Source: Octopus bimaculoides (lineage: Eukaryota). From it: DNA of 32,635 nucleotides. The DNA is taken from the NCBI RefSeq assembly GCF_001194135.2, contig NC_068994.1, positions 45,915,374-45,948,008 on the forward strand, read 5' to 3'. Both the position numbers and the translations under genes were made by a program. How positions within the stretch are numbered: position 1 is the first letter of the stretch; every line of letters begins with the position of its first letter. A model generated the notes under the pieces. It was not told where the DNA came from, ran no database searches, and worked only from the letters and a program-made list of their open reading frames with translations. Shown in pieces: positions 6,211 to 17,187 of this stretch.

Positions 6211-6590
6211 AGACAACAACTACTAAACAACCCAAACAAGACTCCGATATATTCGGAATGGGACTGAGTGGACGTTACAATGATGATGATGACGACGACG
6301 ATGATGACGAAGATGACCACCACCACGATAGTAGTAAAAATAAAAATAACGACAGTAAGTTTGGCGGATGGGGAAATATATGGAAAAGTGGTTCTGGCAC
6401 GAATACAGACAATAAAAAATCGAAAACTAGTACAGGAGACAAATCACGACAAATGACACCCGTGGAAGAAACGTTGACAAAATCATTGTATGCTAAGTTT
6501 GTTGCGTACGAGAAAATGGCCGAGTCTTATAAATTGCTAGGATTAGGTGTTAAATTGAAGCACATCCTTGTACATAATGCTTTTAACTAA
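6211..6590 (+). CDS. Terminal coding exon of unknown gene A (paralog 1); Asp/His-rich, conserved C-terminal helix
   Basis: Acceptor 'ttctcattttgttttgtAG' ends at 6210, phase-1 entry. Open frame TTTTKQPKQDSDIFGMGLSGRYN(D-run)...EETLTKSLYAKFVAYEKMAESYKLLGLGVKLKHILVHNAFN to TAA 6588-6590. AATAAA at 6827-6832. The C-terminal block aligns with the exon at 16829-17187. The ORF-track start at 6099 is intronic. Confidence 0.88.
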
Positions 6591-6661
6591 AAACCAAGGA
6601 GTAAGACAAGCTATTGACCAGATAAAATTCAGATGTCACTATATTCGTTAGGGAGAAGTTT

Positions 6662-6684
6662 TGTGATCTATCTATCTAATTATC

Positions 6685-6763
<79 letters not shown>
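6662..6763. repeat. (TATC)n microsatellite in the putative 3' UTR of gene A
   Basis: Direct read of TATC/CTAT repeats between the stop (6590) and AATAAA (6827). Confidence 0.95.
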
Positions 6764-6764
<1 letters not shown>

Positions 6765-6826
6765 AGTTGATCCATATTTTAAAACTCATTTGAATAATAT
6801 AAATGTAATTGCCACTGCAAATCTGA

Positions 6827-6832
6827 AATAAA
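6827..6832 (+). terminator. Candidate polyadenylation signal of gene A
   Basis: AATAAA about 240 nt after the stop, followed by T/GT-rich sequence. Confidence 0.5.
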
Positions 6833-7642
6833 AAAGATATATATAGTTTCCCAATTTATTTCTTTAGTTTAATTTTTATTTTGTGTTTGTGTTCTGTGTT
6901 TATTTTTATAATTATTTGTGTGTACGAGTGTATACGTCAGTGTATGCGCATGTAGTGTAGGTGGACCGGGGTTTCAAAGATTTATTTTCTTTCCTTTCTG
7001 AAAATTTCCATAAAAGACAGCAATCGATGGTCAGAGTAAATCGTTTGCATATATTTCAGGGAATAGTTAATAGATAGATTCATTTCCTGTTTAAATATGT
7101 GTATGTATGTGTATGTATATGTGCCTGTGTCTTTGTATCTATATGTACATTCATATATACACACACGGACATATATATACATATGTATATCTACATATAT
7201 ATATATATATATATTTATTTATTTATATATAAATATGTATGTGTGTATCTACGGGTGTGTATGTGTGCTTATGACTTTTCATCAATATACATGTATATGT
7301 ATATATTTGTTCGAATGAAGGTATGTGCGCATGTATGTGGTTATTAGTTCAGTTTTTAATTATCGTGTGTACATTTGTGTATATATGTGTATATGTGTGT
7401 GTGTGCTTCTTTCTATGTGTAAACAAATAGAGGGTGTGTCTGTGTGAGAGAGAGTGGGGATAGAAAGAGAGAGCTAAAAGAAATTACTACGTCCAATATT
7501 CAAGATCGAAGATGTCCTAATGTTAGTATTTACCATGTCTCAGCAAATAGTGTTGGGTACCTATGCACTCGCGATTACATACAGATACCATCTCGGTTCG
7601 CCCACACTGGATTTTACGCAACATGCATTAGCTACAACAGCA

Positions 7643-7681
<39 letters not shown>

Positions 7682-8004
7682 NNNNNNNNNNNNNNNNNNN
7701 NNNNNNNNNNNNNNNNNNNNNNNNNNNNNNNNNNNNNNNNNNNNNNNNNNNNNNNNNNNNNNNNNNNNNNNNNNNNNNNNNNNNNNNNNNNNNNNNNNNN
7801 NNNNNNNNNNNNNNNNNNNNNNNNNNNNNNNNNNNNNNNNNNNNNNNNNNNNNNNNNNNNNNNNNNNNNNNNNNNNNNNNNNNNNNNNNNNNNNNNNNNN
7901 NNNNNNNNNNNNNNNNNNNNNNNNNNNNNNNNNNNNNNNNNNNNNNNNNNNNNNNNNNNNNNNNNNNNNNNNNTATATATATATTTCTGTGTATGTCTAA
8001 GCTT

Positions 8005-13408: not shown

Positions 13409-13488
<80 letters not shown>
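13409..13488. repeat. (GT)n microsatellite
   Basis: Direct read. Confidence 0.97.
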
Positions 13489-13490
<2 letters not shown>

Positions 13491-14469
13491 GTGTCCACTT
13501 AGAACGGTTGACGACGTTACTGATAATAGCGGTAGTAATGATTGCAGCGGAGTTGGTGGTGATTAAAATGCTGTATTTTTGATGGTGGCCTCGACGGTCA
13601 TTGCGATAGAAACGGTTATTGTGTTGATGGTAGCAGTATTGGTTAAAAACGTGACGCATTGTGAATACTTCTGTATAAGCTTCTTGGTTGTGCATCTGCG
13701 AGATAAAGAATTCATATTGCTTTTATTTTACTTCATTCAAATTTTCTTGGTATAATATGTGTCTCTATTGACAGAATGATGAATAAAATATTGAAAGAAT
13801 TCCGCTGGGTTTGTTGTCTGAAACTCGCTGTTATATTCCGCAGTTTGATGTAGATAATACCATTTCTTCTAGAATTCTGTATAAAGAAATATCATATATT
13901 TTTCACTGTAGCCAAACGACTTGTAGCAGTATTATACAGTACTGCTAGTACATATACTAGCGTATGATAATTATCACATACGTGAGATCATAAGGTCATC
14001 ACATGTAAAGCCAATAATACTGTCAGATGTATCCACGAATGGGGGAATACAACGACTACTTCTTGTCTGTAATTCTACAACTAGTTATCATTTTGCCATA
14101 AGATTTAACTAAAGAGAGGTCCAACACCTGCAAAAAATAGTAGCCAAATCTCATTCAAATCGTGTCTTACTCTCTTAAAAAGAGCAAAGGAAGAATAGGC
14201 TAAATATAGTCTCTGTACACGATGTCTTAAATATATATAAGAAAGTCCTATACACTATGACTTAAATAAATTTATGAAATGATGGTCACAACTTGAATAG
14301 AATTGATTATGCATATGTTGTATCAGAGCCGAGCTATAATTTTACAGTACAACATATAATCTGCATCAGGGGTATATGTGTCACATGAAGCGAAATGAAA
14401 TTTAATTGACTGAAATACTAAAACCGTATCGCATTAGGTAGGTGATATCAGTATGACATGTAGTAGATA

Positions 14470-14689
14470 ATAATCCTTTCTATTATAGGGACAAGGCCTG
14501 AAATTTGGGGGAGGTGTATAGTCTATTACATCGCCCCAAGTACTCAACTGGTACTTAATTTATCGAACCCGAAAGGATGAAAGGTAACATCGACCTCGGC
14601 GGAACTTGAACTCAGAACGTAGCGACGGGCGAAATACCGCTAAGCATTTCGTTCAGCGTGCTAACAATTCTGCCAGCTTGCCACCTTAG
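14470..14689 (-). mobile_element. Family-A-headed SINE
   Basis: Reverse complement of the A head and central domain. Probable TSD tgtagtagata (14459-14469) / tgtagtaaata (14690-14700). Confidence 0.88.
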
Positions 14690-15623
14690 TGTAGTAAATA
14701 GTAATACCACATGTGCTATATATTAGATATGACATGTAGAAGACGACAGTTAAATGAGATATAGTTAATCAGAATACTAACAATTATACAGACTGTTTCA
14801 TCTGTCAAACTCTTAGCAATGTCATATATAGTAAACTGTAAATTTATCAGAAGTCTATGGTCACATTAGTGCTACATGTTCAAGACTGAATCAGTGCAAT
14901 GTATAATGTAACAGTACTACATGTACAAGGCTGTAACTAGAAACCACCAGTTTATTACAAAGTACAGACCTAGACTCCGAGACAATATTTCACACACGGT
15001 GAACATGTCTATGAAAACTTTTAACTGTGAGAAAAAGTGTATGGAAACTATCTGAAAGTATCTATTAGTGAACATAAAATAAAATATCGTGAACAGTTTT
15101 CCTATTTGCTGTGTAAATCACCTGCTGGAATATTGTTTACTAAAGACTTTAGATAACCCTTCCGTCTATTTTTCTTTAACCTTTATCCCCACCACTTTTT
15201 CTCTTTATTTGTTAATTTATTTATATTTTTATTCTTGGCATTCTCTCTCTAATCTATCATCTGTTTAGTTCATTTTCCATCCCCACCAGCTGATCGTCTG
15301 TTTTCTTCATTCTTTCTCCATCCCCACCAACTATCGTCTGTTTTGGCCATCAACCTCCCCTTCAAGTTCTCGTCTGCTTTGTTGATTCACCTGTCTGACA
15401 TTAAACAGAACAACCACTTATATGCCATTATATATATATTTTATTCAGCAGAAATTATCTGCTAATATTGTTTAATCTAATTGAGGGTCAGTGATATAAC
15501 TATAAATACAGGGATAACTTTCAACTTTATCCATCATTCTTTTATTGGTTTGAAACGTATTCAATACTGCTCTCACTATGAACTCACTAAGCGTAGCATT
15601 CTGTTTTTTCACTGTCTCTGTAG

Positions 15624-15659
15624 TGACATCTGATGCTTTCAACTTTATGGGTGGATATG
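15624..15659 (+). CDS. 36-nt micro-exon of gene B: (V)TSDAFNFMGGY(G)
   Basis: Acceptor 'ctgttttttcactgtctctgtAG' ends at 15623, consensus donor G|GTAAGT at 15660, length 3n, phase 1/1, open and compatible with both flanking exons. Confidence 0.72.
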
Positions 15660-16752
15660 GTAAGTCACATATTATGCTTTTATAAATTTTATTTTGGATT
15701 CTGTCTGTGTCTATGGTAAGTCATTCTTTTATGGCCAACTGTGTGTTTCTTTATTTGTCTCTCATAAGCATATAGAATGCTTTGGTTTATGCTTGTGTCT
15801 GCGTTTGTCTCTACCTCTGTTTCTCTTCACTTCCGCTCTCTACTTTCATTCATTCTTCTCTCCGCTTGTACTTTCTATTTGATGCGGCTTCTTTCATTTT
15901 TTTCCTTCTTTTCATTTTTTTTTTTTTTTGCGAAATATTTTTTTAAAGATGAAGGATAAAAGGAACAAGAAAGAAAACATGAAAGAAGCAGAATAAGATA
16001 GAAAGTGAAGATGGAGTCGAAAGACACGTAACAGAGCGGAAGTGTTTAATCTATTTTGCTCTAAGAAAATATCACAATGTGCTCTAGTTCACTGCGCTGT
16101 TTGCATTAACAAGACACTGAGAGTGAGATTCTTTTATTATAGATTAAGTGATTCATGTAAATGTGTCGTCCGGCAGACAAAATGGTGAATGCGTTACCTT
16201 TCAGTGAGAGATGTGATGAAAGAGCTTTTCCACCTCGATGAGTTCATTCTTACGGATAGCAATCTTTAACCTGAACAAACTCGACAAAAGTGTTGGTTCA
16301 CGCGAGACAGGTATACCGGTCGTATTCACCGTTATATTTTCGAAAAGAAATCTGAGAGCAGCTGCTAGATTGACAGTTTACGATTGTCCACCAAGAATCC
16401 TAGGCCTTACACTGATTTCCCCAGATATTTCTGCTGGGAAAGTATCACACCATGCTGCACTCCAGGTTAGTGACTTATTGCCACGAAACGGGAAGTTTAT
16501 GGTGTCATTGTTTTTACTGTCCTGTCAATCTAAGCCTAATCGTTGAAAATACAATGTAAAACTGGTTGCTTCTGAACAACGTTAACTAATAATATTTAGG
16601 TGGGGGGAAGTTACATAGAGAGAAAGGAAGTTGCATCACAGTTAGAAAACGAAGACTCGTAACGTATTTGTGTCGTTCGCAGATCCGAAATTCAAACCTA
16701 ACTGAAACACAATTCACAGATAGTTGTGTGTGTGTGTGTGTGTGTGTGTCTA

Positions 16753-16789
<37 letters not shown>

Positions 16790-16828
16790 TTAACGTGTAT
16801 TTGAATGTGCATCGTTTATTCGTTGCAG

Positions 16829-17187
16829 GTGGAGACAAAAAGGCGGTTGAACACCCACATCATGGCAACTTCTTCGCTGATGTCGGTCGAGATATCGGCA
16901 AGTTCTGGGGCAGTCTGTTCAAACACAAAAAACCTCACCATGAAGATGACCATGCTGCTGAAAAAACGTCAAGCTGGAAAGGAAGGCTTCCCAAATCATC
17001 AGACAGTAGGGATATGGAGGCCATTATGACGAAATCTATGTATGCACAGTTCAAAGCTTACGCCATGATGGCAGATGCTTATAAATTACTTGGAGATAGT
17101 GTCAGACTGCAGAGAGAAGCGTTGATGGATATGAATGACTCTGGTCCTGTTGAAGATTCACCAAGACCCCCAGAATGGCATAAATAA
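16829..17187 (+). CDS. Terminal coding exon of unknown gene B (paralog 2); His-rich, conserved C-terminal helix
   Basis: Acceptor 'catcgtttattcgttgcAG' ends at 16828, phase-1 entry as in gene A. Frame GDKKAVEHPHHGNFFADVGRDIGKFWGSLFKHKK...MEAIMTKSMYAQFKAYAMMADAYKLLGDSVRLQRE...PEWHK to TAA 17185-17187. AATAAA at 17239 and 17269. Confidence 0.9.

Follow-up and report, generated by a model that had tools for sequence, protein, structure and literature searches.

Cephalopod genomes contain many lineage-restricted genes, almost none of which has a known function. A stretch of 32,635 nucleotides from Octopus bimaculoides (CM046614.1 from position 45,915,374; hereafter the window, which is letter-for-letter the same in the newer assembly, gaps included) raises the question of what is encoded by two of its exons, which lie on the + strand and share a block of 31 amino acid residues (aa) in their products, and which an initial annotation made from the letters alone took for a pair of unrecognised genes. 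The identification of these two genes (gene 1 and gene 2, in their order along the window) and of the family to which they belong is made here with high confidence. As an overall explanation, we consider it fairly probable that each of the two exons terminates a two-exon gene, and that these paralogous genes lie in a small octopod-restricted cluster and encode secreted proteins with a conserved helix.

The two terminal exons and their shared block

The block reads EETLTKSLYAKFVAYEKMAESYKLLGLGVKL in gene 1 (window positions 6465-6557, + strand) and EAIMTKSMYAQFKAYAMMADAYKLLGDSVRL in gene 2 (17017-17109, + strand); direct translation reproduced both peptides as the initial annotation had quoted them, with their coordinates and their ungapped identity of 18/31. 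The codons differ at 11 of the 18 identical residues, all eight of the synonymous pairs listed earlier being correct, and 61 of the 93 nucleotides of the block are identical. Each block is situated in an exon that follows a polypyrimidine tract and an acceptor AG (6209-6210 and 16827-16828, respectively), is entered in phase 1, as had also been proposed, and has an open frame to its TAA stop codon (6211-6590 and 16829-17187). The match between the two exon products in BLASTP extends over 69 residues (E-value (E), 7e-12) and also spans a small motif upstream of the block, WG-x-[IL]-[WF]-K, and the exon match was recovered by tblastn against all six frames of the window (E, 4e-10). The similarity of the exons is far above the chance level. 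No third copy of the family was found in the window by tblastn at very low stringency. Comparison of the introns and flanks of the two genes gave nothing significant, the sole match being exon-to-exon (72% over 68 nt), in agreement with the earlier description of the flanking introns as unrelated.

Gene structure and the octopod family

Gene 2 corresponds to LOC106870533, the product of which (XP_014772147.1, 146 aa) is annotated as 'uncharacterized protein'. Its first coding exon was found by scanning for hydrophobic exons that start with an ATG and close at a phase-1 donor, and encodes MNSLSVAFCFFTVSVVTSDAFNFMGGY (15578-15659). By inspection of the N-terminus, by which the signal peptides of the family were judged, this product begins with a putative signal peptide, MNSLSVAFCFFTVSVVTS, having a hydrophobic core and small residues at -1 and -3 before the Asp that opens the mature part. 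An independent splice prediction of the gene is identical to XP_014772147.1, and the span 15578-17187 equals positions 10001-11610 of the O. bimaculoides gene locus (L002). In Octopus sinensis, the orthologue is LOC115219157, and the 200 bp 5' of the ATG are 97.5% identical between the two species. A protein of 293 aa from Octopus vulgaris, CAI9732543.1, has genes 1 and 2 fused via a small exon (cag/ATTCGTCAGG...GGTCGCG/gtaaga) that matches positions 12773-12842 (+ strand) of the window; it is without the C-terminus of gene 1 and without the signal peptide of gene 2, and probably reflects either an error of gene prediction or read-through transcription.

For gene 1, a profile search identified the O. 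sinensis orthologue XP_029645121.1 (153 aa), the signal peptide of which is carried by a separate first exon. This exon encodes MNASYIILCALAILVVEASTTPSEKKN at positions 10001-10081 of the O. sinensis locus (L001), and the putative signal peptide MNASYIILCALAILVVEA, again with small residues at -1 and -3 on inspection, is followed by STTPSEKKN. Window position 37 corresponds by synteny to L001 15503, so that exon 1 of the O. bimaculoides gene is expected ~5.5 kb upstream of the window; a search for a signal-peptide exon of gene 1 within the window found none. The database name of XP_029645121.1, 'transmembrane protein DDB_G0274347-like', is composition-driven and misleading. A two-exon coding structure, in which exon 1 carries the signal peptide and the intron is in phase 1, holds for gene 2 and for the A type described below; for gene 1, the phase is taken from the window and exon 1 from O. 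sinensis only. The initial annotation had placed the terminal exons correctly and had missed the signal peptides, the first exon of gene 2, and a paralogue outside the window.

The extent of the family was surveyed in protein collections. When 1.84 billion representative proteins were scanned in full by HMMER with a two-sequence profile, only three clusters were returned, and two profile word searches of 5.8 billion proteins both ended at the same eight clusters. The named members are octopods without exception (Octopus species and Argonauta hians), joined by one Logan sample, and neither the HMMER scan nor the two word searches found relatives in squid, cuttlefish, Nautilus, or other molluscs. 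Of the earlier proposal of a family restricted to the octopus or coleoid lineage, the restriction stands, with octopods only among the 1.84 billion proteins, and the range shown here is that of Octopoda, not coleoids.

Three types of paralogue are distinguished within the family: the A type (O. bimaculoides LOC106884277 with two isoforms, O. sinensis LOC115230163, one A. hians protein, and one Logan genomic contig), the B type (gene 2, its O. sinensis orthologue, and one A. hians protein), and the C type (gene 1 and its O. sinensis orthologue). Further copies on the flanking sequence, envisaged in the initial annotation, are represented by LOC106884277, a third and older paralogue, which is encoded on the opposite strand ~20 kb before the start of the window (CM046614.1 45,891,788-45,895,032). 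Its single first exon, carrying the signal peptide, is combined with either of two terminal exons arranged in tandem, with 85% aa identity (12943-13245 and 14010-14312 in L004, where the gene occupies 10001-14312), leading to isoforms X2 and X1; the same helix module has thus been duplicated at the level of exons. Genomic contigs from Logan SRR11869390 and SRR11869394 (L005 and L006) contain an A-type terminal exon 78% identical to that of O. bimaculoides, and are presumably from another octopod species.

In Argonauta, the A type (- strand) and the B type (+ strand) are ~43 kb apart and show the same divergent arrangement as in Octopus; therefore, the cluster and the A/B split predate the Octopus-Argonauta divergence. 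The A. hians family protein GAB1604397.1 is a gene model without functional annotation. The first exon of the Argonauta B type occurs twice, 373 bp apart (L007 10043-10147 and 10416-10520), with the same 35-residue tblastn match and identical scores, which reflects either duplication at this locus or an artefact of the assembly. The gene 1 type is the most divergent of the three, having 17-23 of 42 helix positions in common with A or B, and was seen in Octopus only, 23 kb of the Argonauta interval lying outside the reading.

Against Pfam-A, both exons and nine members gave no match at the gathering score (best E, 0.015-0.9, composition-driven), a profile search of the PDB sequences gave no match at E <= 10, and Foldseek against PDB found no meaningful fold match, a comparison uninformative by nature for a model made of one helix plus disorder. 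These blank results agree with the earlier remark that the motif was not recognised from any known family. In the library searched, no paper was retrieved with the accessions, gene symbols, SRA run numbers, or peptide strings, and a search on neuropeptide precursors of octopus returned nothing relevant. The genes are publicly annotated, as uncharacterised models only, and no description of the family as such appears to exist; the earlier word 'unrecognised' is apt with regard to function, and less so with regard to the genes themselves, which already stood in the public annotation as 'uncharacterized protein'.

That the two sequences might be chance open frames, a transposon-borne open reading frame (ORF), or decaying pseudogenes is extremely improbable and is contradicted by the results, even though the O. 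bimaculoides gene table consulted has no full-length model of gene 1, for which only a 110-aa ORF model exists. In addition to the E of 7e-12 for the exon match, the frames are intact with syntenic orthologues in three Octopus species, Argonauta retains the A and B types, the helix is constrained as described in the following section, and the window contains two copies only, with unrelated flanks and without any transposable-element (TE) domain in Pfam. The initial view that these are real genes and not a repeat is further borne out by the identity of the splice prediction to XP_014772147.1, by the syntenic O. sinensis orthologues, and by the absence of any TE or Pfam match.

The conserved helix and its possible roles

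All family members have a signal peptide and a mature part without cysteine, the proteins of genes 1 and 2 being about 150 aa long. In the A and B types, the motif [DE]AF[ND]F[LMI]GGY[DG]GDK comes directly after the signal peptide, and it is absent from gene 1; as judged by sequence comparison, this N-terminal mature motif defines the A and B types, not the whole family. DIFGMGLSGRY of gene 1 was considered as a homologue of DAFNFMGGY and rejected, the resemblance being at chance level (shuffle p, 0.4). A variable region rich in Gly, Ser, Asp, His, and Lys comes after the motif, and in the gene 1 exon product the conserved helix is preceded by a disordered stretch rich in Thr, Asp, His, and Lys, which includes a run of 9-10 Asp, plus His. 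The helix itself comprises about 42-47 residues centred on the motif LTKSxYAxFxAYxxMAxxYxxLGxxV, and ten sequences were aligned over 42 columns of this region with no gap; both window genes carry all residues that are invariant in the ten sequences (E, T, Y, F, A, Y, M, A, Y, L, G, and V). In the AlphaFold2 models, gene 1 has one long helix (residues 68-109 of the 110-aa model; predicted local distance difference test (pLDDT) score, 94-95; below 50 elsewhere), gene 2 has a long helix at residues 85-131 (pLDDT, 75-80), and disorder is predicted elsewhere in both. Column conservation along the helix peaks at 102.86 degrees per residue, corresponding to the 3.5-residue heptad spacing (p, 0.0002 versus shuffles; p, 0.016 at the 100 degrees of a straight helix), and mean hydrophobicity peaks at the same 102.86 degrees (p, 0.04, over 42 columns or about six heptads). 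Both the monomer predictions and the heptad periodicity of conservation speak for the conserved helix that had been assumed in the initial annotation.

Substitutions were compared between O. bimaculoides and O. sinensis by a simple counting method. In the 31-residue block, the ratio of non-synonymous to synonymous rates (dN/dS) is 0.045 for gene 1 (1 non-synonymous and 5 synonymous changes) and 0.16 for gene 2 (3 and 4, respectively), versus 0.49-0.54 before the helix (pooled Fisher p, 0.011, for block versus rest of the mature region). The proportion of non-synonymous differences (pN) before the helix, 0.083-0.106, is close to the 0.085-0.096 by which non-coding DNA of the region has diverged. 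The front part therefore evolves at roughly the rate of non-coding DNA and is barely constrained, in contrast to the constrained helix block. Between genes 1 and 2, the proportion of synonymous differences (pS) in the block is 0.72, i.e. saturated, with a pN of 0.25. Altogether, the initial picture of an old duplication under purifying selection, with fast-evolving low-complexity front parts, fits the saturated synonymous sites, the separation of the A and B types before the Octopus-Argonauta divergence, the computed dN/dS values, and the disorder predicted for the front. It was also observed that the coding exons are more diverged between the species than the surrounding non-coding DNA, on small counts: their pS is 0.14-0.20, versus 0.067 for the gene 2 intron (binomial p, 9e-6, for synonymous versus intron divergence) and 0.025 for the 200 bp before the gene 2 ATG. 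Part of this synonymous-over-intron excess may come from the simple counting method.

As regards mechanism, the products would be exported through the secretory pathway, and the helix would be their functional module, with the invariant residues in one heptad-spaced stripe. This stripe may be the surface that packs on other helices, either of the protein itself (in a coiled coil or bundle) or of a partner protein or receptor, and the variable front part would be free to diverge. Such a role of the helix as a packing interface, in oligomerisation or docking, is proposed here tentatively on the basis of the models. Several points weigh against this explanation as a whole. The O. bimaculoides gene table consulted lists no model of gene 1, and exon 1 of gene 1 is known from O. 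sinensis only, the O. bimaculoides copy being outside the window. The selection estimates rest on few substitutions, with 1 and 3 non-synonymous changes in the blocks, and no RNA-derived contig encoding the exact proteins was found in the sequence collection searched. As for the helix, the structure predictions are of monomers, the hydrophobic periodicity is modest (p, 0.04) with apolar residues in four of the seven heptad positions, and a membrane- or lipid-binding helix, or one that folds only on its receptor, fits equally well. The hydrophobic moment of the long family-wide helix is only moderate, 0.3-0.38.

The same anatomy, with a signal peptide carried by the first exon and no cysteine, would also suit a prohormone or precursor of peptide signals, in which a convertase cuts at K-K/K-R to free the conserved dodecapeptide [DE]AFNFxGGYxGD from the N-terminal end and a long helical peptide from the C-terminal end, both acting on a receptor in the manner of a hormone, neuropeptide, or pheromone. 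Many hormones are long peptides that form an amphipathic helix. In 7 of 8 A/B sequences from Octopus and Argonauta, [DE]AF[ND]F[LMI]GGY[DG]GD stands right after the signal peptide and is followed by KK or KR, and RKK, KKK, or KK is present just before the helix in the Octopus and Logan A types. However, these basic sites are not kept throughout, as the Argonauta B type has KQ, and neither the Argonauta A type nor genes 1 and 2 have a basic pair before the helix. Gene 1 is without the N-terminal motif, for which its resemblance is at chance level (p, 0.4), a Gly-basic amidation signal is absent, no member matches a Pfam hormone family at E <= 1, and the literature search found neither peptide strings nor accessions in any paper of the library searched. 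We regard processing of this kind as unlikely. Equally doubtful is the broader proposal that octopods invented secreted signalling peptides, in which the N-terminal dodecapeptide would be accompanied by a receptor-binding helix of about 45-60 residues and the exons would evolve fast via receptor or sexual co-evolution.

A faster divergence of exons than of introns is known from venom, immune, and reproductive genes. The products might accordingly be host-defence, salivary, or reproductive effectors, with amphipathic helices that act on membranes or foreign proteins and with exon divergence driven by an arms race or sexual selection. Consistent with this are the lineage-restricted tandem gene cluster and the excess divergence of the coding exons (pS of 0.14-0.20 versus 0.067-0.096 in non-coding DNA; p, 9e-6), next to a proximal promoter that is 97.5% identical. 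Also, gene 2 has a further predicted helix at residues 42-58, whose amphipathic segment, NFFADVGRDIGKFWGSLFKH, has a hydrophobic moment of 0.66, is rich in His and Phe/Trp, and is flanked by KK on both sides in a His-rich context. This helix is specific to the B type, being kept in O. sinensis and Argonauta and absent from gene 1 and the A type, whereas the family-wide long helix reaches a moment of only 0.3-0.38. Moreover, the amphipathic segment has little net positive charge (residues 42-58: isoelectric point (pI), 8.6; about +1), and the mature proteins of genes 1 and 2 have pI values of 5.0-6.8 (6.8 for the whole gene 2 protein), unlike typical cationic antimicrobial peptides. An effector role is considered quite improbable.

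Still less probable, and with only a slight chance of being correct, is the assignment of the family to structural or matrix proteins, for example of acidic biomineral or extracellular material, which would self-assemble via the helix. The run of 9-10 Asp plus His in gene 1, the Gly/aromatic-rich motifs GGY and GGWG, and the combination of a self-association-type helix with disordered regions are features of this sort. The poly-Asp run, however, is limited to the gene 1 lineage, the tandem repeats typical of material proteins are absent, and the peptide strings are absent from the supplements searched of the argonaut eggcase-matrix papers, which are small files.

Other features of the window and comparison with known systems

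The positions of the gene features and of two assembly gaps are compiled in Table 1. Both of these gaps lie between the gene 1 stop (6590) and the gene 2 first exon (15578), and no frame crosses them. The gap-free O. sinensis sequence is collinear with the window on their two sides (window 7645/7974, L001 27636/28050; window 10328/10429, L001 31096/32289), and its equivalents of the two gaps gave no match to family-related coding sequence. Gene 2 exons hidden inside the gaps were considered and rejected, the O. sinensis equivalents being micro- and minisatellites. Both candidate polyadenylation signals of gene 2 precede a further gap, at 17415.

Table 1. Coordinates of gene features and assembly gaps in the window
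Feature	Position	Strand	Remarks
Gene 1 terminal (second) coding exon	6211..6590	+	phase 1; stop TAA 6588-6590; 126 aa
Gene 1 predicted long alpha-helix	6459..6584	+	residues 68-109 of the 110-aa model; contains block 6465-6557
Gene 1 candidate polyadenylation signal AATAAA	6827..6832	+	pattern only
Assembly gap	7682..7973		intergenic; GT/TA microsatellite in O. sinensis
Assembly gap	10329..10428		intergenic; ~1.2 kb in O. sinensis, with ATAC/AT microsatellites and a 67-bp x 7 minisatellite
Gene 2 candidate TATA box TATAAATA	15502..15509	+	69 bp before the ATG
Gene 2 first coding exon	15578..15659	+	putative signal peptide MNSLSVAFCFFTVSVVTS, then DAFNFMGGY and one base; donor G/GTAAGT
Gene 2 intron, phase 1	15660..16828	+	93.3% identical to the O. 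sinensis intron
Gene 2 terminal coding exon	16829..17187	+	118 codons and stop TAA 17185-17187
Gene 2 first predicted helix FFADVGRDIGKFWGSLF	16870..16920	+	residues 42-58; AlphaFold pLDDT about 57-60
Gene 2 long predicted helix	16999..17139	+	residues 85-131; contains block 17017-17109
Gene 2 candidate polyadenylation signals, AATAAA x2	17239..17274	+	at 17239 and 17269; both kept in O. sinensis

The remainder of the window contains repeats. A TGTA/TGGA microsatellite with a 40-bp higher-order period (~9 copies) is located at 18608-18970, and gives rise to long spurious 'CMYV/WMDG' open frames on both strands. Two dispersed repeat families resembling short interspersed nuclear elements, about 200-400 bp long, are present repeatedly in the window and in many copies in the O. 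sinensis loci; copies are found at 826-1057 and 29770-30001, with partial ones at 13099-13259 and 14520-14687, and dispersed repeats are also present at 7974-8188, 27852-28232, and 30591-30876. Several assembly gaps adjoin dispersed repeats or microsatellites. Rfam and tRNA scans of the window were empty.

Among the many lineage-restricted genes of cephalopods, one family is now defined by its members, three paralogue types, gene structure, a cluster in Octopus and Argonauta, and one sharply delimited helix module. As small, secreted, cysteine-free proteins, its members would be easy to synthesise and to test for localisation, processing, oligomeric state, and activity in bioassays. If they are signalling peptides or defence/reproductive effectors, they would exemplify a molecular invention specific to octopods; otherwise, the family is an ordinary orphan.

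The nearest entries, LOC106870533, LOC115219157, XP_029645121.1, LOC106884277/LOC115230163, and GAB1604397.1, are the same genes, their orthologues, or their paralogues, all of them models without functional annotation, which bear the names 'uncharacterized protein', 'hypothetical protein', or the misleading one cited above. From the ORFs of transposable elements, the octopod family differs by its two copies in the window, unrelated flanks, syntenic orthologues, and lack of a TE domain. It is comparable to the reflectins in its restriction to a cephalopod lineage and in its Tyr/Met-rich conserved segments, whereas reflectins are proteins of the cytoplasm with little Ala, Lys, and Leu, and the octopod proteins have signal peptides and are rich in these three residues; a regular-expression search of four mature sequences found no reflectin motif, [MF]D(x5)MD(x5)MD(x3-4). 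With helical peptide-hormone precursors, such as those of the corticotropin-releasing factor/diuretic-hormone type and molluscan egg-laying hormone, the family has in common a signal peptide, the absence of cysteine, a long amphipathic helix near the C-terminus, and some upstream basic pairs, but it differs in having no Pfam match, no conserved cleavage sites, and no amidation signal. With short secreted coiled-coil or helical-bundle proteins, the likeness lies in the heptad periodicity of conservation and hydrophobicity over about six heptads; no PDB sequence matched the family at E <= 10, and Foldseek gave no meaningful fold match. In comparison with all these systems, the octopod genes are a tidy lineage-restricted secreted family, not a new kind of system.

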